A DNA stretch of 63,869 nucleotides, counting the filler, from Dimorphilus gyrociliatus (lineage: Eukaryota > Animalia > Annelida), in assembly GCA_904063045.1 (NCBI GenBank). It is 4 parts of 4 records of this genome, joined end to end, with 100 filler letters (N's around TTAATTAATTAA, not from the genome) between each part and the next. Parts side by side here need not be neighbours in the genome. Positions count along the whole stretch, not along the records: positions 46,441 to 56,977 come from CAJFCJ010000272.1; 3 more parts are not named here. One strand, 5' to 3'. The position numbers and the translations under genes are program-made. The notes under the pieces were generated by a model. That model did no database searches. It was not told where the DNA came from and was given only the letters and a program-made list of their open reading frames with translations. Positions 1 through 56,977 of this stretch are shown piece by piece (position 1 is the first letter of the stretch; every line of letters starts with the position of its first letter).

Positions 1-1682
1 AAAATTTTCAAACGGTAGAAAATGGTTTTAAAATGGTGTGTAAAGGATTAAAATCCTCTTCAAACACATTAAAACATGTCTATTTTAGTTGTTGCGAATT
101 GAATTCTAAGCAAGCAGATTATCTTGGAGAAGTATTTCAATACTGTTTTTCATTGGAACACATTGATTTATCTTTTAATTCCAAAATGAATAATGACGAT
201 AGAGAAGGATTCAAAAAGATATGCCAGAATTTAAAATCATCCTCCCACACTCTTAGAAGTATCAATCTGAAAAAGTGTAATTTGAATAAGGACCAGGCTA
301 AATATTTAGCGGAAATATTAAGTAAATGCTCCTTCTTAGAAAATGTAAACTTGTCGAAAAATTTTAAAATGAAACATAGTTTTGAAAGCATTTGTAAAGG
401 ATTGAAATCATCTTCGAACACTTTAAAACATTTAAATTTAAGCAAATGCGAATTGAGTAATTTCCCAGCTACTTGTCTTGGAGAAACACTTGGAAAATGT
501 TCTTCATTGGAAAGTCTTAATCTATCTTACAATTTTGAAATGGGAAGTGGATTTGAAAGTATTTGCCAAGAACTTTATTCGTCTTCAAGTACTTTAAAGC
601 GAGTGATTGCAACTAATTGTAACTTTGATCAGGATCAACAACAAACCAATCATCTAGGGGAGCTATTTGAAAAATACAACAAACAAATTGGAGGAACAAA
701 CTAATTGTCTTGGAGAAACTTTTAAAGAATGTTTTTCTTTGGAGAATGTTGATTTAGCTTTTAATTCTAACATGGGCGACAATGGAATTAAGATGATTTG
801 TAAAGGACTCAAATCATCCTCAGACAGTTTACAACAGATAAGAGTTGACTCTTGTGAATTGAGCGATAATGGAGCAAAATATCTAGGAGATTTATTTGCA
901 AAATGCTTATCATTAGAGGAAGTTAATATGTCGAATAATTCAAAAATGGGTAATGAAGGATTTGAAAAGATTTGTAATGGACTGGAATCATCTTTCAAGA
1001 CTTTAAAGCAAATTAAAATGAAAGATTGTGAATTGAATGAGAATTGTATGAAAAATTTTACAAAAACAATATCAGAGTGCACTTCAATAGAATTTCTTGA
1101 CTTGGCTAACAATTCTAAAATGAAGGATGCATTTTCATTATTTTGCCAGGAACTCGGATCCTTTTCCTACACTCTGAAGCGTATTAGCGTAAGTAACTGT
1201 AAATTGAGTAGTAGTCAAGCAAGTGATCTTGGAGAAGCACTCAAGAATTGCTTACAACTGGAAAATGTTGATTTAGATCATAATGCTGAAATGGGAGAAA
1301 ATGGATTTGAAAAAATTTGCATAGGACTCGAACCTTCTTCAAACTCCCTGGAAGAAATCCGATTAAGTTCATGCAAATTGAATTCAAATCAAGCGAAACG
1401 CCTTGGAAAAACATTTGAATGCTGCTCTTCATTAGAAGTTGTTGATTTGAGTAATAATTCTATAATGGAGATGATGGATTTCAAATAATTTGCCAAGGAC
1501 TTCAATCCTCTTGTTTAACTTTAAAAGAAATTAAAATAAATGATTGTAAATTGAACGCAAAGCAGGAAAAATGCCAGAAAGAATTATTTGAAAAATGTTT
1601 TACTCTGAGGAATCAACCTAAAATGACACATGGAATCCAAGGCAAAAAAAAAGTTGTTAAGAAACAAAATGGTAGCAAATAG
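1..1682 (+). pseudogene. Ribonuclease-inhibitor/NLRC3-like LRR gene, 5'-truncated by the window edge, with two frameshifts
   Basis: ORFs 33-704 and 667-1488 contain 57-61 aa alternating repeats (LExVDLSxNxxMGxxGFxxICxGLKSSSxTLKxIxLxxCxL). The frame switches near 690-700 with no GT-AG intron. A second switch at about 1468 (atggag for atgggag) resumes GDDGFQIICQGLQSSCLTLKEIKINDCKL to a TAG at 1680-1682. Confidence 0.85.
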
Positions 1683-1740
1683 GCTTTGTCTGATGCTGGA
1701 AACACTTTTTACAGCTAGACAAGATGATAACAAGGCAACA

Positions 1741-1900
1741 AGGTTCCCAGGCTACCAAACTTGTGTCCAATGTTGAAGAATTAGCAAGGTCCTGATGGAT
1801 GTTGTTTCCAGTTGATCCTTCCAGGTTGTGGTTAGATGATTGGAGTGAAACAGTGAGGATTTATATACTTGAAGACTTTTCTCTACTGTCCAATCACCAC
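1741..1900 (-). repeat. LTR/promoter-like dispersed repeat, copy 1 (homologous to 16467-16628)
   Basis: Colinear similarity with 16467-16628 (ccaatgttgaa..gtcct..ttccagtt..atcct..gagtgaaa..gaggatttatata..cttgaa.acttttct.tact.tccaatcacca). The minus strand carries ATTGG followed by a TATATAAA box. Confidence 0.6.
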
Positions 1901-2143
1901 TTTACAGCTACGAACCCAGCTAGTTCATATTTGTCATTAGAACAATATATTACAAAGTCAGTACACTATATTCAATACAAAAATATTTTAAATATATGAA
2001 ATTCTTTATCATTTATAATTTTTCAAAAAGATGAGGTGTGCTATCAATTTATTCATTTAGCATATTATGCCTACAACATTAAAAATACAATATAGATATT
2101 GATTTTCAAATGAAAGTTGACATTTTTGTTTTATGCCTTATTT

Positions 2144-3287
2144 TCAAAGCTTTTTATAGATCATATCAGAAATTGTAGTTGGAGCGTAAGACAATGGAAT
2201 TATTAAGTATTTCGGTAAGAAACCAACTGTATAACGATTCCTCGGCCATTTTGAAAGTATTGAATGTTCATAAGCGTCTGTAACTTTGTATAAATCATTT
2301 GATCCAGATTTCTTGGTTTTTTTTTTGTTATATGTTTTTGAAACTGTAAAAAAAAACTATATAAATATTTTAGCTCTAAAACAAAAAAAACCACCAATTT
2401 GATGGACAATTTTTACAGGTTTTAAGGTACATTTCTTCACTTGGATATTTTTCCTTTACCCATTTCGAAGCTCTCTTGTAACTGTTCAAAACTCTTTGAA
2501 TATCCGAATTGTTTTTACGTATATCCGTTCGAAATTTTCCAGGTTCGATTGTATGAACAGAAACATTCCAGTCTAGGCATTTTAGATGAAATCTGTTTTT
2601 GGTTTTATGCATTTTTTTTTGCATTGAAATTTCTAGAATTATTGTTAAGCTTACCCTAAAATGCTTGACAGACCCTCAATACCATTTTTAGACATACCGT
2701 AGTATAAATTTGCAGATTGACTTCGTCCAGCCATAGATCCCATGTTAATAATTCTACCTTTAGCTCTATTAATTAATTCGAGAAATTTAAAGCACATTAC
2801 TGCGGGTGCAACTGCATTTACTCTTAAAACTTCCACTAATTCTTTTACTAAAAGAGTATCTGGAGTACCGCAACAGTTTCCAATAATTCCTGCATTGTTT
2901 ACTAAGGCGTGCAAACCTTTATCCCCTACCTTTTTTGCTACCGTTTCTTTTAGATTATCAATTTCCGCTTCATTGCAAACATTTAAAATGTACGTTGTCA
3001 ATTTACTTGAACAGGATTCCGTAAGCTCCTTAGATCCATTTTCAGTTAGGCATGTTGCAATTACATTCATTCCTAAGCCGTCTAGACGCTTTGCCAGTAA
3101 ATTTCCAAAGCCTGTGGAGACGAAATAGTGTACAATAGACAAATAAAAGTATATAATTACCAGTATCGCATCCCGTTATTAGAACGTATTTGTCTTGTAT
3201 ATTTTCGATATAGAAAGACCTTATGAACCATTCTATAAGCCTTGCGAAAACTATTAAAAGAATAACCCAGCCAATGATAACAAACAT
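2144..3287 (-). CDS. Short-chain dehydrogenase/reductase, SDR9C type (RDH/HSD17B6/DHRS9-like), 4 exons, intact
   Basis: Exons 3287-3161, 3111-2655, 2592-2417, 2343-2144 joined by GT-AG introns of 49, 62 and 73 nt. N-terminal hydrophobic anchor, TGCDTGFG, VNNAG, catalytic YGMSK, IEPG, and the family C-terminus KWPRNRYTVG..IIPLSYAP. Confidence 0.93.
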
Positions 3288-4869
3288 AATGTTTTCACCG
3301 CCCTGATGACAAGCAGACTGTAATTTTTTAGCAGGGTTTTTTTTTCAACAAACAAACAAACAAACTCAAATTAAAGCTCAATGAATTGAATGGTAACATA
3401 TTTTTATTATTATTATATTTTAATTCATTATCAGTTGATATGGAAGATTTTTTAAAGGTTATCTACTACTTCTGCTTGTAATAAATACCATACTAGGAAA
3501 CAGCTGCTCCCAATTTTTTAAATCTTTTCAATACTAATACAACTTACGCCATCTGTTTGCATCTATGGAAATAATAACACTGCAATAATTGTAAACCTAA
3601 CCTAGAAGAGCCTATTCTCTGTTTCTTGTATTCGTAGAATAAATAGGTCAAACAGTTATTTGAGAAATTGAGTATTAAAATCTCCAATTTTTAAATGCGA
3701 GACTATTACAATTGTAAGAAGCTTTTTCGTATTTAAAGCCTAAGCTTGAATATTCTGAAACATAAACGTTCAAATTTGATGATGACGACACTAATTTGAA
3801 GCCAAATAATGTAGATCAAGAAAATCTTTAGATAGCACAATTCGGCATTTTTCCTTTTTACTTCTTTCCTTGCTATACATTCCGAAAACTTTGACATCCC
3901 AAAACTGTAAATTAACACCCAGATGTTCGTGTTCAATGTATTCGAATGAGCCATCTAGTGGCAAACTACACGTTAATTTATTCCTTGCAATATCATCATC
4001 GCAATTTATTGCTATATCGACTGTAAATTTTAACAGGAGTATAGGGAAAACTGGTAATTGTATAGGGAAGAAAATAGCTGCAAAGCTGAAAATTTGAATA
4101 TGTAAAAGGTATTTATACAACTCATGATCAAGTAACTAAATGCAAGAAAACTGAAACTGAAGATTTTTCCTTGATCAAATAATAGATATATCAATTATAG
4201 ATATGTAGATAAATAGAAATATTCATACCAATTCAATTCTGAGGGATTATTAGTCAATATGAACGATAAAAGACAAACTTATCAATCTATCTAAATTGTT
4301 TATCAAATGGAAAAAGAACAAAAAGAAAGTGTTGACAAAATTCTATTTGTAATATTTTTTCCAGGATAATCTAGGACATTTAGAACATTGAATAATCAAT
4401 ACATTTCTGTCATTTAGTAAAATTCTAAAAATAGAAATTGATAGAAGAAGAATGAAAAACCAATCAATCAGTTTGTACTGATAAATCTTACAATTGTCAC
4501 GTGGTATAGAGTTCATAAAGAGAGCAGTCTTTTTGATTATACCAAGAAAATCCTTGGTGTGTTTTTCTAGTGTATTCTAAAATAATATATTTCGTAATCT
4601 GTGTTTTTTGTATTAAAATTGCCAGAAATAATTAATTGTTTAAATAATTTATTTGTAATAAGGTAAATTTAATCATAATATAATTCTTTTGTAGTGTCTT
4701 TTAGAATGTTTTTTATCCTCTTCCTATAGGAAAAACTTTCTACTGATTGGCTATTTTTCTAACCAATCAGAGTTAATTTTAAAGGTGAAGGAAAACAATG
4801 ACCATCATCTGTTTATCAACAAAAGTTTGAGCAACTGAAAGGAGAACTCTGAAAAGAAATTATTTGTGG

Positions 4870-46440: not shown

Positions 46441-49400
46441 TTTACTCCTCCTGCCGATCCTGTGTGTGTGTGTGTGCCTGTTTCGGACAACAACTCTCCC
46501 ATCTCCGTTCCCGTCACCTCTACACCTGTCTCGCGTGTTATGGACATATACCGGTTCTCCCTCCCCTCTTCTACCTCTACTACCTCTACTACTACTACCA
46601 CTGCTACTACGGCTGCATCTTCTTCCTCTTCGGTTCTGGTGCCCCCTCTGCCGTCCTCTCTTCCTCTTCTGCTACTGCTGATCCGGTTTCGTCGAGGGTG
46701 AGTACGGCTGTTCCTGGCGGTCATGTTTCTGTGTCTGTCCCTCCTTCTCGTCCCCCGTCCAAGTCCCGTCCCGCCCCATCTGTTGTTACTGTTGCTGTCC
46801 CTGTACCTGACCGTTCCCCTATCTATACTCGTTCCCTCGCGGCCAAGAAGAAGAAGGCTGCTTCTTCTCCTGCACCCGCAATAGCCCCCATAAGGGTTGC
46901 TACGCAAACTTTTTACAACTCCGAACGGCGTCGTTCGGTTGGTGGTGCCTCTGCTGTTGTCGCCGCTGTTCCTCCCTCGTCCGCCATTGTACCTGTTGAT
47001 AATTCAAAATCATCCTGTGGGACTTCGGTTAGCGTGGCCGGTACTCCGGTTAACGCTCCCACAGATAGGCCTCAGCCAACCGCTAATCCCTCCGCTGCCC
47101 CTGTCTGTGAGAAGAATCTTTCTCCCACGAGTAGGCCTGCGCCGGCCCCCTGTCCTAATCAGGCAGCGGCTGACTCAGACCGTGTGACAATTCCTCCCAA
47201 CGCGCCTAGGCCTCCGCCGGTCGTTGCTTCTGTGTCCGCGCAATGTCCTTGCAAGGTGTCGCCCTGCGTGTGCATTTCCGGAGCTAATGTCTCCGCCGCG
47301 TCTCCTCCTACCGTTCCCCTTCTCCCTACCGACATCCCGTTAACCTATCCTCTTCTGGATAGAATGTGCCCTGTTTGCAACAACTTTTCCGGCACTACCA
47401 ACAGGATTTCAGCCCACATCCGCTCCGTCCACGCTAAGCAAGTGACCTTTATGTGTCGGGGCTGTCGCCATTTCTTCCGTTCACTGGGGATTGTGAAGAG
47501 ACATTTCAACCGCGATCATGGGGTCATCCCTCGTCCATCTATTTAGATGACTCGGACTCTCCTGCCGCTGCATCCCAGTCCCCCCCTTCCCAGCCCATTG
47601 TCCAACGCATCTCTGTTGGGCCTTCCCCCGCCACCATTCCCACTCTTCCCGCTCTGCCGAATGGCTCGTTTGCGAAAGTGGTCAAATCTCCCCCCCCGGC
47701 TCTTCCTTCCGCAAAGGCTCTCTTGCCGCTCGCCACTCTGCCGCCGTCGCCTTCTAAAAACAAAAATAATAGTAAGATCAGGAAACCCCGTCCCCGTAAG
47801 GTTATCTCCTCCTCAGCACTCGTCCCAAAAATACCCCCGGCCAGTGCGATCCCAGATTCGGGTTCGGTTGTTTCTTCCTCCTCTTCTAGGGCCACCCTTG
47901 CACGACCGACGGAGGCTGGGAAACCTCCTCCTAAAGTCGGTGCTCCGACCAAGACAGTTCGTTCCCCCCCAACTACAGGTCCGAACCCCTCTGCCCAAGC
48001 TCGGATTTCCCCTCCTAAAGAGCGGATTTCCCCGCCTAAAGGTCAGATTTCCCCGCCTAAAGTTAATAAGGGTTGAGCTCTCCGGACTCGGCCGCTGGTC
48101 CTGCCTCCGTGATGTCTCCCCCGCCTCCCCCGCGCCCTTCTTCCACAAGCCTAAGTCAACTTATCCGTGAAGAACGCGTCGCCTCTAATCCCTCCCCACC
48201 TAGGCCTACCCTTGCCCCCGGTATCGACTCGTCACCGGTGGCGCCCCTGGTGGTCCCCGATTCCCCCCCGCCGCCTTCGTGCGATACGGAGAGGGATGGT
48301 TCCTACGACGAGGACGCTGACATTATCCCCAGTTCTCTCGTCCCTTCTTCCTCTTCTCCCCCCCGCTTTCTTGTCCCCGCTCTCCCGCTCGAGATTGGTC
48401 TCCCCCTCCGCGGTTGGATCGGTCGGTGTCCCGTGACCACGAGGTTACTAATGATAATAATAATAACAGTCTCCTCCCCGACCCCCCGTCCCCTCCTCCT
48501 GCGCACGTGTCCCATCAACAGCTTGAACGGGAACGCGAGGAGCAACTTTCGGGTTTCGCTGCCGCTATCCTAACTGAGTTTGCCCCCAAGATTATTGGAA
48601 GTCAGTCCGAATGGTCCCGCGTGGAAGAAGTTTTCGACGCCTGGGTTCTCGCCATTTCCAACGCCAAGTCCAGGGTGCATGAGAGTGCTGGCGGTAGAGT
48701 CGCGAATAGGAACTTTGCTCGCCCCCTCCGAATGCGGCTAACAATCAATGGCAAGCGGCTACTAATATCCAAAGGGCCTACAAGCGTAATCCGGCTAGCA
48801 CTTTCCGCCGTATCGCTAACCCTGAGGAGACCAAGTGTTCCGCTTCCATTGAAGATATGACCTCTTTCTTTATTGAATCGGTCGCCCCTCCTCCTCCTTC
48901 ATATCAGTGGTCTCCCGACAGGAGTTTCTTCCGGCCGCGGCCCCACCGCCTGACCCAGAAGACGTTCAACTCGCCAATGAAATCCCCCCTGCTCTCACCC
49001 CCGATACCTTTAACTTCGAAAGCAGGGCCATCGACGGCATAGAATTGACCGACCCTAACCACCCCTTGCTCCGTCCCCCATCCCGCGCTGAGATTGTCGG
49101 CCAGCTTAAGCGAACCAACAACTCTGCTCCCGGTCTTGACGGCATCACCTACAAGGATCTTAAGAAATTCGATCCGAAAGGCTTAACCCTCAGGGCTTTC
49201 TATAGGTTGTTCTGGCGACATGGACAGATTCCCTCCTGTCTGAAGCGGTCTCGCACTATAATGATCCCCAAAAAGGATCTCGACCCTTCGCTGCCGGCCA
49301 ACTGTAGGCCTATTGCCCTCCTCTCTACCATTTACAAACTTTTTAGTAGTCTGCTGGCCCGGCGTCTGAGTAGATGGGCCAGAGACAATGATATCCTTAG

Positions 49401-51878
49401 CAAGGAGCAAAGGGGATTTACTACGGCCCCCGGTGTCTTCGAGCATAACTTCGCCTTGACCTCGGCCCTTGACGAGGCCAAACGTAGTGATAAACGCATC
49501 TGCCTAGGATTCGTCGATATTGCGCAAGCCTTCCCCTCTATCCCCCATTGCGTTATCTTCGACATGTTGTCCCTTGTAGGAGTGCCGCCCAGTCTCGTTA
49601 ACCTTATCCGGAATGTATATACCAACGCCACTACGGAGGTTATCACGACGGAAGGATGCACAGCACCCATTTCCATCCACAAAGGTGTTAGGCAGGGCGA
49701 CGGTCTCAGCCCCTTCCTCTTTAATCTCTGCTTTGAGGGAGCTCTACGTAGCGTTAACGCCTCAAAAGACAGAGATGGGTTCAAGATCGCCGCTCAGGCG
49801 GCTGTCCTAGGTCTAAGGTCCGTATCCATTTGCGGTCTAGCCTATGCCGATGACCTTGTGGTGGTCGCAAACTCTCGCCGTGGTCTGCAACACCTCCTCA
49901 ATGTTGCCGAGCGGTCGGCGGGTCTGGCAAACCTAAAATTTGCTCCGCGTAAATGCGCTACCTTGTGCCTCCATCGTGGAGTCGCCGACCCGACCCCCCT
50001 ATTCGTGGCTAACGAACCTATTAAGGCGCTAGGCCTTGAGGAGACCTACACCTATCTGGGCACGCCCATTGGCTTCAGGAAGGAGCTTCTCAAGGATGAT
50101 GGGGTGATTGAGAGGATCCGCTCCCTTCTTCGGCTTACTATGGAGTCCAACCTCGCGCCCTGGCAAAAGGTGTCCTCCATCAAGGCCTTCATTCTCCCCC
50201 GTATTCAATTCGCACTGCGAACCCACCGTTTCCTTAAGGAGGAACTAGCGGACCTCGATTCGATGGTTATTCGCGCTATCCGCACCACCATGGCCACCAC
50301 AAACAACGCCGCTAGGTCGTTCTTTGCCGCTCCCGCTAAAATGGGCGGTGTAGGCCTAATCCCCACTAGGGTAGAGGTGGACATAGCCCGTGTGGGACAC
50401 ACTTTTCAACTCCTCAAATCGGAGGACCCTACCATCCGCTTTATCGCCTGCGCAACTCTTGTTAAGGCCGCTAAGGCCAGAGTGGCCCGCGGCACCGCTC
50501 TTACAGGGGACGTTTTGGCCTCTTACCTCAACGGGTCAACGACTCCTCCTTTCTCCTCTTCCTCCTCTTCCGCTCAGACGGTGATGTCAGTCACTAGGTC
50601 GGCCTCCAGGCGCTTGCACAAATCTATAAACCTTGAATGGCACCTTGATGACGCCCTTACGCCTACCATTACCGCCACGGTGAGTAGGAGTTGGCACCAG
50701 AACCAGCCGCAATTTCGCCACGAGGTCCAATCCAACTGGCAGGAATTGTCGTTTGGGGATGACGAACGCAACCTCGAACCCCTAGCTATCCGTATCCGTC
50801 GCACCCACGAACCTTTCCCATTACTTAGGTCGGCGGTCACGGAGCTCAATGTTAGAGAGTTCGCTAAATTGGCGGAGCAGGGCAGGTCCTTCCAGGACAC
50901 CTGCTTGCACCCTGTCTCCAACCATTTCCTTTACACCGGCTTCGGCTTGCGGTATAAGGACTACCGATTCATCTTTCGGGCTCGGCTGGGTCTTCTCCAG
51001 ACCAATGCCGTCAAGTCCAGATACAGTGCCCGGGTTAGGCCTGATTGCAGGCGGTGCCACTTCCAAGTGGAATCAGTGCGGCATGTTCTAAACAACTGCC
51101 GTACTGGGTATGGCCTGTACGGTGATCGACATAACGCCATCCAGGATCGTCTGGTCAAAGGTGCCCGCCTGGCGCCCGGTTCCACCATTACGGTAAACAG
51201 GACGTTGCCCGAATCCTCCACTGCCCTTCGCCCTGACATAGTGATTAGGTGCGCGGATGACAGGGTGGTGCTGATCGACGTCACGGTCCCCTTTGAGAGG
51301 CCTGGCGCCCTTGCTCGCGCTGCCCAGGAGAAGATCAACAAGTATGCGGTCCTAAAAACTGAGCTGGAGGGACAAGGCAAGGCAGTAGAGATTCTACCAT
51401 TTGCTGTTGGTTCTTTGGGCGCCTGGTGCAGGGGGAACTCCAAGGTCTTTCGGGCTCTGGGCATAGCGTTCGCTTACCGGGGTATGCTGTCCCAGCTGTG
51501 CGTGGCGGAAGCGATTCGTGGCTCAAAGGACGCCTACGACGCGCACATTAACGGTCATTAAAATAAAAATGTACTGGCTATCAACTGTTTATTCGTTTTT
51601 TCGTCTGTTATGTGTCTGTGATATGTTAAGGGTGTCGTAAATTATTGTAAAGTGCCTGTGTCACTGGGATTTACCCCTTTTCCCTTGCTTCTACATCAAT
51701 CCTATTCTGCTATTTGTTCTCATGTGCCGGTTCCTGTTGGTCCACATTGGCCTTTAACTCCTGTCGTCTATGTCACTTATACCCCTCTTTTTTGTTTACC
51801 TAACTCCCTCTATGCCATTCATCCTGCAATTGAAAAACACTGTCTCCTCCTTTTACCTGTATAATACATTTAAATAAC
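46441..51878 (+). mobile_element. Utopia/NeSL-clade REL non-LTR retrotransposon, copy 1 (unspliced; 5' end in the gap)
   Basis: Two C2H2 fingers (CPVC..HIRSVH and CRGC..HFNRDH, 47367-47520) and a Ser/Pro-rich N-terminus, then RT and REL (next feature) and a ~317-nt 3' UTR. LAPWQKV..KAFILP, YRFIFRARL, IDVTVPFE and the terminal SKDAYDAHINGH resemble Utopia proteins. Confidence 0.9.
48907..51561 (+). CDS. Reverse transcriptase + CCHC + restriction-like endonuclease (C-terminal 884 aa of the element ORF)
   Basis: SAPGLDG, RPIALL, GVRQGDGLSPFLF, YADD, YTYLG, CRRC..ESVRHVLNNC, RHN, RPDIV..D..KINKY. Confidence 0.95.
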   Translation: MVSRQEFLPAAAPPPDPEDVQLANEIPPALTPDTFNFESRAIDGIELTDPNHPLLRPPSRAEIVGQLKRTNNSAPGLDGITYKDLKKFDPKGLTLRAFYRLFWRHGQIPSCLKRSRTIMIPKKDLDPSLPANCRPIALLSTIYKLFSSLLARRLSRWARDNDILSKEQRGFTTAPGVFEHNFALTSALDEAKRSDKRICLGFVDIAQAFPSIPHCVIFDMLSLVGVPPSLVNLIRNVYTNATTEVITTEGCTAPISIHKGVRQGDGLSPFLFNLCFEGALRSVNASKDRDGFKIAAQAAVLGLRSVSICGLAYADDLVVVANSRRGLQHLLNVAERSAGLANLKFAPRKCATLCLHRGVADPTPLFVANEPIKALGLEETYTYLGTPIGFRKELLKDDGVIERIRSLLRLTMESNLAPWQKVSSIKAFILPRIQFALRTHRFLKEELADLDSMVIRAIRTTMATTNNAARSFFAAPAKMGGVGLIPTRVEVDIARVGHTFQLLKSEDPTIRFIACATLVKAAKARVARGTALTGDVLASYLNGSTTPPFSSSSSSAQTVMSVTRSASRRLHKSINLEWHLDDALTPTITATVSRSWHQNQPQFRHEVQSNWQELSFGDDERNLEPLAIRIRRTHEPFPLLRSAVTELNVREFAKLAEQGRSFQDTCLHPVSNHFLYTGFGLRYKDYRFIFRARLGLLQTNAVKSRYSARVRPDCRRCHFQVESVRHVLNNCRTGYGLYGDRHNAIQDRLVKGARLAPGSTITVNRTLPESSTALRPDIVIRCADDRVVLIDVTVPFERPGALARAAQEKINKYAVLKTELEGQGKAVEILPFAVGSLGAWCRGNSKVFRALGIAFAYRGMLSQLCVAEAIRGSKDAYDAHINGH

Positions 51879-51898
51879 TCTGTTCTAGTTAGTTTAAT
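51879..51898 (+). other. U2 snRNA-like 20-mer at the unit junction (repeated at 53706-53725)
   Basis: TCTGTTCTAGTTAGTTTAAT vs U2 nt 39-58 TCTGTTCTTATCAGTTTAAT (recalled from memory): 17/20 identical. Confidence 0.65.
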
Positions 51899-53705
51899 CG
51901 CTAGCTGGCAATCCATTGGGTTGCCTTAATAACGATTACGGGATTTTTGTGTGGTCTGGGTTCCTAGAAGCTTGCTTCAAAGAATCCTGGGTTGACTTGG
52001 TCTAGCAGTACCTCCAAGTTCGGCCCTTCTTCTCAATGGAGAAGGCCTCACTTAAGACCTCCAAGGTGGAACAGTTACAAAACAGCCCTTTTCAGGGCTA
52101 CCGGAGGAGCAGATGACGATGGGCAGGGCTGTACAAAGTAACGACGGCTCCTCTCTATCTGAGCTCATGGACAAGTCTCCTGTTCGACGTGAGACGAGAT
52201 GGAAGACGCGGCAAAGCAGGATGCGGGCTCTTTAGCTAGCGTCCCCGCGGAACACAACGGCCTGGACTTTGGTCCGGCAGTGGGCGCTGCAGAGGACGAG
52301 GATGCTGGATACATGGCGGATATGTTATGTGCGGCTGATGTGCGGCTGGCCTCTCAAGAACGTCTTCTCTGCCTTCCCGCGGCCCGACGCTCCTTCCCTC
52401 CTCGTTCTTTGTTTATTCCCCTGCCGATCCTGTGTGTGTGTGTGTGCCTGTTTCGGATAACCTCTCTAACTCTCCCATCTCCGTTCCCGTCACCTCTACA
52501 CCTGTCTCGCGTGTTATGGACATTACCGGTTCTCCCTCCCCCTCTTCTACCTCTACTACCTCTACTACCACTGCTACTACGGCTGCATCTTCTTCCTCTT
52601 CGGTTCTGGATGCCCCCTCTGCCGTCCTCTCTTCCTCTTCTTCTACTGCTGATCCGGTTTCGTTGAGGGTCGGCGGTCACGGAGCTCAATGTAAGAGAGT
52701 TCGCTAAATTGGCGGAGCAGGGCAGGTCCTTTCAGGACACCTGCTTGCACCCTGTCTCCAACCATTTCCTCTACACCGGCTTCGGCTTGCGGTATAAGGA
52801 CTACCGATTCATCTTTCGGGCTCGGTTGGGTCTTCTCCAGATCAATGCAGTCAAGTCCAGATACAGTGCCCGGGTTAGGCCTGATTGCAGGCGTTGTCAC
52901 TTCCAAGTGGAATCAGTGCGGCATGTCCTAAACAACTGCCGTACTGGGTATGGCCTGTACGGTGATCGCCATAACGCCATCCAGGATCGTCTGGTCAAAG
53001 GTGCCCGCCTGGCGCCCGGTTCCACCATTACGGTAAACAGGGCGTTGCCCGAATCCTCCACTGCCCTTCGCCCTGATATAGTGATTAGGAGCGCGGATGA
53101 CAGGGTGGTGCTGATCGACGTCACGGTCCCCTTTGAAAGGCCTGGCGCCCTTGCTCGCGCTGCCCAGGAGAAGATCAACAAGTATGCGGTCTTGAAAACG
53201 GAGCTGGAGGGACAAGACAAGGCAGTAGAGATTCTACCATTTGCTGTTGGTTCTTTGGGCGCCTGGTGCAGGGGGAACTCCAAGGTCTTTCGGGCTCTGG
53301 GCATAGCGTTCGCCTACCGGGGTATGCTGTCCCAGCTGTGCGTGGCGGAAGCGATTCGTGGCTCAAAGGACGCCTACGACGCGCACATTAACGGTCATTA
53401 AAATTACTGGCTATTAATTGTTTATTCGTTCGTTATGTGTCTGTGATATATTAAGGGTGTCGTAAATTATTGTAAAGTGCCTCTGTCACTGGGATTTACC
53501 CCTTTTCCCTTGCTTCCATACTATTTCCTAATTCTGCTATTTGTTACTCATGTGCCGGTTCCTGTTGGTCCACATTGGCCTTTAACTCCTGTCGTCTATG
53601 TCACTTTTACCCCTTCTTTTTGTTTACCTAACTTCCTCTATGCATTCATCCTGCATTTGAAAAACACTGTCTCCTCCTTTTACCTGTATAATACATTTAA
53701 ATAAC
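51879..53705 (+). mobile_element. Utopia-like copy 2: complete 5' and 3' ends, lacking the 4131 nt equivalent to 46698-50828 (spliced form)
   Basis: 5' UTR/ORF start (ATG 52036), junction gagg|gtcggcgg at 52668/52669, REL region 52709-53401, 3' UTR. Confidence 0.9.
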
Positions 53706-56700
53706 TCTGTTCTAGTTAGTTTAATCGCTAGCTGGCAATCCATTGGGTTGCCTTAATAACGATTACGGGATTTTTGTGTGGTCTGGGTTCCTAGAAGCTT
53801 GCTTCGAAGAATCCTTGGGTTGACTTGGTCTAGCAGTACCTCCAAGTTCGGCCTTCTTCTCAATGGAGAAGGCCTCACTTAAGACCTCCCAAGGTGGAAC
53901 AGTTACAAAACAGCCCTTTTCAGGGCTACCGGAGGAGCAGATGACGATGGGTAGGGCTGTACAAAGTAACGACGGCTCCACTCTATCTGAGCTCATGGAC
54001 AAGTCTCCTGTTCGGCGTGATGACGAGATGGAAGACGCGGCAAAGCAGGATGCGGGCTCTTTAGCTAGCGTCCCGCGGAAGACAACGGCCTGGACTTTGG
54101 TCCGGCAGTGGGCGCTGCAGAGGACGAGGATGCTGGATACATGGCGGATATGTTATGTGCGGCTGATGTGCGGCTGGCCTCTCAAGAACGTCTTCTCTGC
54201 CTTCCCGCGGCCGACGCTCCTTCCTCCTCGTTCTTTGTTTATTCCCCTGCCGATCCTGTGTGTGTGTGTGTGCCTGTTTCGGATATCCTCTCTAACTCTC
54301 CATCTCCGTTCCCGTCACCTCTACACCTGTCTCGCGTGTTATGGACATTACCGGTTCTCCCTCCCCTCTTCTACCTCTACTACCTCTACTACCACTGCTA
54401 CTACGGCTGCATCTTCTTCCTCTTCGGTTCTGGGTGCCCGCTCTGCGTCCTCTCTTCTCTTCTTCTACTGCTGATCCGGTTTCGTTGAGGTCTCCTCACT
54501 GACCCCTCGTCCCCTCCCCTGCGCACGTGTCCCATCAACAGCTTGAACGCGAACGCGAGGAGCAACTTTCGAGTTTCGCTGCCGCTATCCTAACTGAGTT
54601 TGCCCCCAAGATTATTGGAAGTCAGTCCGAATGGTCCGCGGTAGAAGAAGTTTTCGACGCCTGGGTTCTCGCCATCTCCAACGCCAAGTCCAGGGTGCAT
54701 GAGGGTACTGGTAATAGATTCGCGAATAGGAACTTTGCTCGCCCCCTCCGAATGCGGCTAACAATCAATGGCAAGCGGCTACTAATATCCAAAGGGCCTA
54801 CAAGCGTAATCCGGCTAGCACTTTCCGCCGTATCGCTAACCCTGAGGAGACCAAGTGTTCTGCTTCCATTGAAGATATGACCTCTTTCTTTATCGAATCG
54901 GTCGCCACCTCCTCCTTCATATCAGTGGTCTCCCGATAGGGAGTTTCTTCCGGCCGCGGCCCCACCGCCTGACCCAGAGGACGTTCAACTCGCCAATGAA
55001 ATCCCCCTGCTTTCACCCCGATACCTTTAACCGAAAGTAGGACCATCGACGGCATAGAATTGACCGACCCTAATCACCCCTTGCTCCGTCCCCCATCCCG
55101 CGCTGAGATTGTTGGCCAGCTTAAGCGAACCAACAACTCTGCTCCCGGTCTTGACGGCATCACCTACAAGGATCTTAAGAAATTCGATCCGAAAGGCTTA
55201 ACCCTCAGGGCTTTTTACAGGTTGTTCTGGCGACATGGACAGATTCCCTCCTGTCTGAAGCGGTCTCGCACTATAATGATCCCAAAAAGGATCTCGACCC
55301 TTCGCTGCCGGCCAACTGTAGGCCTATTGCCCTCCTCTCTACCATCTACAAACTTTTTAGTAGTCTGCTGGCCCGGCGTCTGAGTAGATGGGCCAGAGAC
55401 AATGATATCCTTAGCAAGGAGCAAAGGGGTTTACTACGGCCCCCGGTGTCTTCGAGCACAACTTTGCCTTGACCTCGGCGCTTGACGAGGCCAAACGTAG
55501 TGATAAGCGCATCTGCCTCGGATTCGTTGATATTGCGCAAGCCTTCCCTCTATCCCCCATTGCGTTATCTTCGACATGTTGTCCCCGTAGGAGTGCCGCC
55601 CAGTCTCGTTAACCTTATCCGGAACGTATACACCAACGCCACTACGGAGGTTATCACGACGGAAGGTTGCACAGCACCCATTTCCATCCACAAAGGTGTT
55701 AGGCAGGGCGACGGTCTCAGCCCCTTCCTCTTTAATCTCTGCTTTGAGGGAGCTCTACGTAGTGTTAACGCCTCCAAAGACAGAGATGGGTTCAAGATCG
55801 CCGCCAGGCGGCTGTCCTTGGCCTAAGGTCCGTATCCATTTGCGGCTAGCCTATGCCGATGACCTTGTGGTGGTCGCAAACTCCGCCGTGGTCTGCAACA
55901 CCTCCTCAATGTTGCCGAGCGGTCGGCTGGTCTGGCAAACCTAAAATTTGCTCCGCGTAAATGCGCTACCTTGTGCCTCCATCGTGGAGTCGCCGACCCG
56001 ACCCCCCTATTCGTGGCTAACGAACCTATTAAGGCGCTAGGCCTTGAGGAGACCTACACCTATCTGGGCACGCCCATTGGCTTTAGGAAGGAGCTTCTCA
56101 AGGATGATGGGGTGATTGAGAGGATCCGCTCCCTTCTTCGGCTTACTATGGAGTCCAACCTCGCGCCCTGGCAAAAGGTGTCCTCCATCAAGGCCTTCAT
56201 TCTCCCCGTATTCAGTTCGCACTGCGAACCCACCGTTTCCTTAAGGAGGAACTAGCGGACCTCGATTCGGTGGTTATTCGCGCTATTCGTACCGCCATAG
56301 CCACCACAAACAACGCCGCTAGGTCGTTCTTTGCCGCTCCCGCTAAAATGGGCGGTGTCGGCCTAATCCCCACTAGGGTAGAGGTTGACATAGCCCGTGT
56401 AGGACATACTTTTCAACTCCTTAAATCGGAGGACCCTACCATCCGCTTTATCGCCTGCGCAACTCTCGTTAAGGCCGCTAAGGCCAGAGTGGCTGCGGCA
56501 CCGCTCTTACAGGTGTTGTTTTGGCCTCTTACCTTAATGGGTCAACGACTCCTCCTTTCTCCTCTTCCTCCTCTTCCGCTCAGACGGTGATGTCAGTCAC
56601 TAGGTCGGCTTCCAGGCGCTTGCATAAATCCATAAATCTTGAATGGCACCTCGATGACGCCCTTACGCCTACCATTACCGCCACGGTGAGTAGGAGTTGG

Positions 56701-56977
56701 CACCAAAACCAGCCGCAATTTCGCCACGAGGTCCAATCCAACTGGCAGGAATTGTCGTTTGGGGATGATGAACGCAACCTTGAACCCTTAGCTATCCGTA
56801 TCCGTCGCACCCACGAACCTTTCCCATTACTTAGGTCGGCGGTTACGGAGCTCAGTGTAAGAGAGTTCGTTAAATTGGCGGAGCAGGGCAGGTCCTTTCA
56901 GGACACCTGCTTGCACCCTGTCTCCAACCATTTCTCTACACCGGCTTCGGCTTGCGGTATAAGGACTATCGATTCAT
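53706..56977 (+). mobile_element. Utopia-like copy 3: lacks the 1772 nt equivalent to 46698-48469 (spliced form); 3' end in the gap; many 1-bp indels
   Basis: ATG 53863, junction gagg|tctcctc at 54490/54491, RT motifs in shifting frames 55060-56977. Confidence 0.9.

Follow-up and report, generated by a model that had tools for sequence, protein, structure and literature searches.

The DNA considered here is a window of 63,869 nucleotides (nt), that is, the whole stretch that was analysed, from the annelid Dimorphilus gyrociliatus. One piece of it, at 46441-56977 (10.5 kb, from one record of the genome), contains three head-to-tail copies of one retrotransposon that lacks long terminal repeats (a non-LTR retrotransposon), all on the + strand, and between each copy and the next lies the 3' part of U2 small nuclear RNA (snRNA). 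The searches described below were run on the pieces as they are assembled in the stretch, and not on consensus, frame-corrected or exon-joined sequence. In order along the piece, the array consists of the following.

46441-51878, + strand: copy 1 of the element, unspliced and near full length, with its 5' end cut by the piece edge; apart from the internal deletions of copies 2 and 3, it is collinear with both
51879-52033, + strand: U2 piece 1, covering U2 from nt 39 through its 3' end (66.8 bits against Rfam RF00004, E 9e-12)
52034-53705, + strand: copy 2, a copy of a spliced RNA, the splice donor being joined to acceptor B at 52668/52669
53706-53861, + strand: U2 piece 2, covering U2 from nt 39 through its 3' end (69.9 bits against Rfam RF00004, E 1.6e-12)
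53862-56977, + strand: copy 3, a copy of a spliced RNA, in which the donor meets acceptor A at 54490/54491; the piece edge cuts off its 3' end

The copies are 95-98% identical in pairwise comparisons (blastn). Substitutions, among which transitions predominate, amount to 1% when copies 2 and 3 are compared in their 5' parts, and to 3-5% against copy 1. The copies are also separated by many 1-nt insertions or deletions (indels), which may represent either decay or uncorrected long-read errors, 10 of the 11 in the 5' part adjoining runs of the same base. No copy, as assembled, possesses a single uninterrupted frame from the N-terminus to the endonuclease. Copy 2 retains the 5' segment, the CCHC finger, the endonuclease part and the 3' untranslated region (UTR; 53402-53705), and together with the U2 piece in front of it makes up a unit of 1827 bp (51879-53705). 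Copy 3 is without the zinc-finger region, and many 1-nt indels interrupt its reverse transcriptase (RT) region. In their 5' segments, all of the copies have a short (TG)n run at the equivalent position (about 46463-46478, 52433-52446 and 54259-54272).

As to the junctions, an earlier note, made from the DNA sequence before any search, had described a U2-like 20-mer directly following the 3' UTR, without poly(A), at 51879 and at 53706, and this description holds. The pattern TCTGTTCT-NNNN-AGTTTAAT, with up to two mismatches allowed, has exactly two matches in the window (51879-51898 and 53706-53725), with 0 expected by chance, and both lie directly after ...CATTTAAATAAC, poly(A) being absent, so that both junctions read ...AAATAAC followed immediately by TCTGTTCT. 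The regions around the two junctions are nearly identical over more than 640 nt. The identity to U2 of 17/20 that had been given for the 20-mer is likewise recovered, with three mismatches to the Rfam U2 consensus. However, the 20-mer is just the first 20 nt of a U2 homology of ~155 nt that reaches the U2 3' end. The gathering score of RF00004 is 46 bits (cmscan), to be compared with the scores listed above, and the confident U2 alignment of each piece begins at UCUGUUCU, at model position ~40. Both pieces contain stem-loops IIa, IIb, III and IV as well as the Sm site (AUUUUUG), and all but one or two of the pairs are canonical. The three differences from the human and consensus U2 all fall in the 5' arm of stem IIa, whose 3' arm is altered to match, with all six of the six pairs forming. 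The two pieces differ from each other by one substitution and two 1-nt indels. Because the changes in stem IIa are compensated, the pieces between the elements probably carry the U2 signature of the species itself and not that of a decaying copy, a reading made from structure. The drifted 20-nt mimic of the target that the note had proposed is thus ruled out, by the ~155-nt homology with all of the U2 helices and by the compensated stem IIa. Its statement that no real U2 gene is present stands only in part: U2 nt 1-38 are not found in 46441-56977, but the portion from nt 39 to the 3' end is complete, at 66.8 and 69.9 bits. Scans for an intact U2 with exact 30-mers produced 0 matches in a collection of genome contigs and 0 in a collection of viral contigs.

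The coding content of the element is best seen in copy 1.

47367-47519, + strand: two C2H2 zinc fingers (C-x2-C-x12-H-x4-H) in the N-terminal open reading frame (ORF), from the translation of 46464-47546
48907-51561, + strand: open frame of 884 amino acids (aa) with the RT (YADD), a CCHC finger and a PD-D/ExK restriction-like endonuclease (RLE), from Pfam and translation
about 51046-51099, + strand: the CCHC finger (motif CRRC...H...C)
about 51232-51345, + strand: the PD-D/ExK endonuclease motif (RPD...D...K)
51562-51878, + strand: 3' UTR of copy 1, ending in ...CATTTAAATAAC, with no poly(A)

The 884-aa frame is matched by Pfam RVT_1 at 3.5e-29, and by solved R2 protein structures at E 1e-58, the endonuclease region included. 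In an alignment with 13 relatives, the residues of the CCHC finger (C714/C717/H726/C731) and of the endonuclease (P776/D777/D791/K809) are invariant. In the zinc-finger region nothing scored in Pfam at E 0.01 or better, despite the presence of both C2H2 motifs in the translation. The zinc-finger ORF of copy 1 stops at a TAG that is directly followed by an ATG in the same frame (47544-47549), so that there may be an in-frame stop here, or else two ORFs in a stop-start arrangement. Further downstream, the open frame of copy 1 shifts three times between 48073 and 48907. No Myb domain was matched by Pfam in the N-terminal pieces, where 47546-48907 shifts frame repeatedly and such a domain may be missed; absence of this domain has been employed as a criterion against R2 (PMC13188248). 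Pfam matched neither an APE-type (Exo_endo_phos) domain nor a Ulp1-like protease (Peptidase_C48) in the element.

Taken together, the junction and the domain set mark this as a Utopia-type element at the canonical Utopia site, in agreement with the earlier note, which had recognized a Utopia-type element with its 3' end abutting U2; the junction at nt 38/39, the domain set and the presence of U2-flanked relatives all bear this out. Utopia elements are non-LTR retrotransposons of the NeSL clade specific for U2 snRNA genes, and are defined by the U2 downstream of the element starting at nt 39 (Kojima and Jurka 2015, PMC4640811). Like Utopia, the element is followed at its 3' end by U2 from nt 39 in the same orientation, with no poly(A), and it possesses the same domain order, of N-terminal zinc fingers (one to three in Utopia, two here), RT, CCHC finger and RLE. 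Unlike the known Utopia, it is a deep branch, no more than 37% identical to anything retrieved, and it presents a whole U2 3' part between the copies, an ORF starting ~10 nt later, and two array members that derive from spliced RNA. The best database proteins are 35-37% identical to it, none exceeding 37%, and include those of Ladona, Ixodes, Trichinella (with a Ulp1 domain) and Ciona (Q76IM9), as well as RNase H-RT proteins of the oomycete type. Utopia and YURE families are known from those or closely related hosts (PMC4640811). In a quick tree (LG+G4, 71 trimmed RT-endonuclease sequences, with no labelled Repbase references among them), the RT-endonuclease of the element falls within a clade of 61 rows with a support of 95 in the Shimodaira-Hasegawa-like approximate likelihood ratio test (SH-aLRT), separate from an R2-like clade (support 100). 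The 61-row clade also holds six U2-flanked loci, the Trichinella Ulp1-type proteins, the oomycete-type RNase H-RT proteins and Ciona Q76IM9, and the place of the element inside it is an unresolved deep branch.

Other site-specific elements are less similar. R2 shares with the element a homologous RT and endonuclease, as judged from the match to the solved R2 proteins, but the target here is U2 and not the conserved site in 28S ribosomal DNA (rDNA), and the element lies outside the R2-like clade. Rfam detected no ribosomal RNA in the piece, and, with E values of up to 1 admitted, neither a ribozyme (similar to that of hepatitis delta virus or other) nor any other Rfam family at the 5' end. Keno is also U2-specific and employs the same insertion site in U2, with an endonuclease of the APE type (PMC4640811); the element here differs from it in possessing a C-terminal PD-D/ExK endonuclease and no detected APE domain. 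It also differs from NeSL in the strict sense, which targets spliced-leader genes and encodes a Ulp1-like protease, in its U2 target and in the lack of a Peptidase_C48 match.

Copies 2 and 3 have internal deletions that are bounded by splice sites recognizable in copy 1.

46698-46703, + strand: splice donor GTGAGT, preceded by AGG; left boundary of the deletions in both copies 2 and 3
48468-48469, + strand: acceptor AG (A) used in copy 3, with a TACTAAT branch-point-like motif ~20 nt upstream
50827-50828, + strand: acceptor AG (B) used in copy 2, with a pyrimidine-rich tract upstream

Compared to copy 1, copy 2 is without 46698-50828 (4131 nt) and copy 3 without 46698-48469 (1772 nt), both gaps opening at one and the same AGG/GTGAGT and closing at AG, at two different acceptors. 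By these boundaries, copies 2 and 3 are products of reverse transcription from two differently spliced RNAs, integrated at equivalent places, and the claim of the note that the array includes spliced copies is supported by this one shared donor and the two AG acceptors. Copy 2 cannot come from copy 3, because the donor is destroyed in the latter. With two differently spliced copies present, the array must therefore have grown by separate insertions, at least three. In the assembly, the ORFs downstream of the spliced joins are not in frame with these, and copies 2 and 3 are therefore non-autonomous; the frames of the joins give no sign of a fusion protein designed through splicing. Internally deleted, non-autonomous derivatives of R2 are mobilised via the 3' UTR, and the spliced copies here were presumably mobilised in trans via the 3' UTR that they share. 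A parallel is presented by the spliced integrated retrotransposed elements (SpIREs) of human LINE-1 (Larson et al. 2018, PMC5860796), which are also genomic copies, likewise non-autonomous, of element RNAs spliced at internal donor and acceptor sites. Unlike LINE-1, the element here is site-specific and of the RLE type, and its spliced copies reside in a target array beside an unspliced relative.

Additional evidence comes from relatives of the element, sampled by scanning metagenome contigs with the alignment of relatives, which produced 73 loci (designated L002, L003 and so on), mostly insect-associated. In more than 25 of the 73, U2 from nt 38/39 directly follows the 3' end of the element on the same strand. 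The 5' junctions are variable, the first of them being at U2 nt 30 and the last about 100 nt beyond the end of U2. In L022, L069 and L028 they are at U2 nt 30, 36 or 43, with U2 from nt 1 to the junction upstream; in L007, and also in L023, which lies behind another copy, they are at about nt 66-68; in the tandem L026 the junction is at about nt 61, and in L009 only ATCT separates two copies. Tandem arrangements are thus represented among insect-type relatives (L009:3150-3300, L026:3925-4500, L023:1590-1740 and L058:700-960), the U2 pieces between copies measuring 4 nt, about 23 nt and 29 nt, or comprising the entire 3' part. Inverted U2 fragments are present in L041, L055, L017 and L026. The closest structural parallel to the unit described here is L003, a full-length copy with an apparently intact Utopia ORF of 1477 aa (155-4588), in which the U2 3' end lies 55 nt upstream of the ORF, with a short leader between them, and U2 from nt 38/39 lies downstream; L002 is a copy 99.7% identical to it.

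Three of the relatives are especially relevant to the origin of the U2 piece. L058, L059 and L067 are truncated at the 5' side, near the positions equivalent to 3280, 3134 and 3107 of L003, and are still preceded by the whole of U2 39-187 plus roughly 25-95 nt. Since L023, L028 and L069 are truncated in the same region, with junctions inside U2, the former three are ordinary 5' truncations, and therefore cannot carry the 5' leader of the RNA. In addition, the leaders of L059 and L003 are about 70-75% identical (an estimate from the alignment) versus 96% for their RT regions. These observations suggest that in the relatives the U2 piece and the leader are target DNA duplicated at insertion, and not a part of the element.

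The 3' tails of the relatives were also considered as potential mimics of the upstream half-site (U2 nt 17-38). While cmscan and blastn extend the U2 alignments to about nt 17, over the last 22 nt of the 3' UTRs (L014:2245-2280, L009, L022, L026, L057 and L067), local-alignment scores are no better than those of shuffles (p 0.05-0.77, and 0.05 for the element here), and this candidate was rejected. A 13-mer common to the 5' region here and to the L003 leader was also dropped, with ~1.7 such matches expected by chance. Many of the 3' tails of the relatives possess an AATAAA-like motif 5-12 nt from the junction.

In light of these data, the locus is probably (we would put it at about 0.6) a head-to-tail array of Utopia-type elements of the NeSL group in a U2 snRNA locus, built by repeated insertion with a long duplication of U2 from nt 39 to its end. 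In the course of such an insertion, the bottom strand would be nicked at U2 38/39 and reverse transcription would be primed there, while the 5' end would be attached shortly beyond the 3' end of U2, either at staggered nicks set very far apart (giving a target-site duplication of ~155 nt or more) or through pairing or homology with a read-through transcript of U2 and the element. The new copy would then have U2 39-end on both of its sides, and a whole U2, still open to insertion, would stay upstream; a repeat insertion into this upstream U2 would produce the order element / U2 39-end / element / U2 39-end. Arrays of this kind have precedents. In Phytophthora, Utopia and U2 form arrays that carry U2 39-end fragments, and intact U2 genes, rather than U2 1-38, are found upstream of the element; in Nasonia, Utopia is sometimes tandem, another Utopia making up 20 of the 94 3' flanks; and the 5' junctions differ by family, with no duplication in arthropods and one of 20 bp in reptiles (PMC4640811). 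As to the length of the duplication, the rDNA element R9 of bdelloid rotifers is reported to have a target duplication of exceptional length (Gladyshev and Arkhipova 2009, Gene 448:145). The target of R9 is 28S rDNA, and the duplication proposed here would measure ~155 nt or more. R9 is said to be of the R2/RLE type, and its duplication reportedly measures 126 bp.

Several points weigh against this interpretation. Only two junctions fall within the piece, each of them at a full-length 5' end, and both ends of the array lie outside it, and therefore an intact U2 and the natural 3' flank of U2 cannot be shown. The likely identity of the pieces to a real U2 gene is drawn from their structure, and the argument for a long duplication comes from distant relatives (about 35% protein identity) on insect-associated metagenome contigs and not from this genome. 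Finally, an ORF starting almost directly after U2, both here and in L003, equally fits U2 serving as a transcribed leader.

Indeed, this latter alternative, which takes up the self-targeting proposed in the note, is the strongest competitor, while unlikely. It assumes that U2 39-end is the transcribed 5' leader of the element and a copy of its target, and that new elements cut the old junction of 3' UTR and U2, inserting in the array and sparing the U2 genes. In its favor, the first ATG is within about 10 nt of the U2 piece, which itself has no ATG; both of the spliced derivatives keep the linkage of U2 to exon 1, at 99% identity; L003 presents the same layout, of U2 end, short leader and ORF; and the tandem relatives L009, L023 and L026, whose copies are only 4-29 nt of U2 apart, show that insertion can make do with one half-site. 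However, the piece has not drifted, being a complete U2 3' part with compensated stems, 7% of shuffles are also free of ATG, and the mimicry of the upstream half-site by the 3' tail is not significant. Because truncated copies of the relatives also keep the U2 3' part upstream, and because the leader diverges far faster than the body of the element, a long duplication derived from the target is favored over a mimic borne by the element, a choice that a piece of 10.5 kb cannot settle.

Less probable still is a single insertion into U2 followed by amplification of the U2 piece and the element at the level of DNA, through unequal crossing-over or segmental duplication, with the deletions arising later in DNA. 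The near identity of the two junction regions would fit such a scenario, unequal exchange and gene conversion readily occur in tandem repeats, and the 5' parts of copies 2 and 3, being closer (1%) than other parts (3-5%), could reflect homogenisation. However, both deletions share the AGG/GTGAGT donor and end at AG, and copy 2 is not derivable from copy 3, pointing to two or more RNA-mediated events at equivalent positions; a contribution of crossing-over is possible, but it cannot account for everything. The note had named crossing-over and assembly duplication as the findings that would speak against its own reading; the spliced copies rule out either as the only origin of the array, and the substitutions of 1-5% and the different internal deletions speak against an assembly duplication. 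That the tandem order is an artefact of collapsed or mis-joined repeats is very improbable, for while the many 1-nt indels at same-base runs (those 10 of 11 in the 5' part) do suggest an uncorrected long-read assembly, each of the three copies has a structure of its own, substitutions between them reach 1-5% and are biased towards transitions, the two junctions fall precisely at U2 nt 39, and independent metagenome contigs show this architecture as well.

The sequence just past U2 is of interest with respect to expression of the element. The first ATG after the junctions is at 52036 in copy 2 and at 53863 in copy 3, about 8-10 nt past U2 stem-loop IV, and the U2 piece contains none, although 7% of shuffles have none either. 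This seems to leave the element no space for its own promoter, which suggests transcription from upstream, by analogy with R2 in rDNA. R2 is without its own promoter and is co-transcribed with its target gene. Two hairpins were observed in this region. One, at 52022-52047 (and its equivalent after 53850), directly follows stem-loop IV and holds the first ATG (52036) in its loop (-14.1 kcal/mol, z -2.35). The other, at 52084-52099 and 53912-53927, in the 5' region of each copy and ~55 nt past the U2 3' stem-loop, is almost identical to the 3' stem-loop of metazoan histone messenger RNA. Its stem of 6 bp closes a UUUC loop and is flanked by A-rich sequence on the 5' side and by ACC on the 3' side, with a purine-rich stretch after that. 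Its match to Rfam RF00032 (18.9 bits, E 0.34) is below the cut-off and its fold is not unusually stable; it might mark a site of RNA 3'-end processing for the read-through transcripts of the preceding unit.

Overall, as arrays of Utopia with U2 fragments have already been published (PMC4640811), the locus mainly extends this pattern to a new, deep-branching lineage, the unusual additions being the spliced-RNA copies and the duplication of the whole U2 3' part. The former show that spliced RNAs of a site-specific RLE element can integrate at the proper target, which bears on mobilisation in trans via the 3' UTR. As to the latter, this locus and the insect relatives show that, in some insertions of Utopia, the U2 3' part is left complete on the 5' side. 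A possible, if doubtful, extension is that the element is a target-preserving hitch-hiker, each insertion duplicating U2 from nt 39 to the end, with the upstream U2 staying intact and functional, its snRNA promoter driving read-through into the element, and the array growing at its head. It would be testable whether an intact U2 with its promoter is restored at each insertion, and whether this U2 then survives and drives transcription of the element. The persistence of Utopia in an essential, low-copy gene family was called a puzzle by Kojima and Jurka (PMC4640811), and such hitch-hiking, if true, would answer how these elements persist in a target of only about 10 copies, with the essential gene never being lost.

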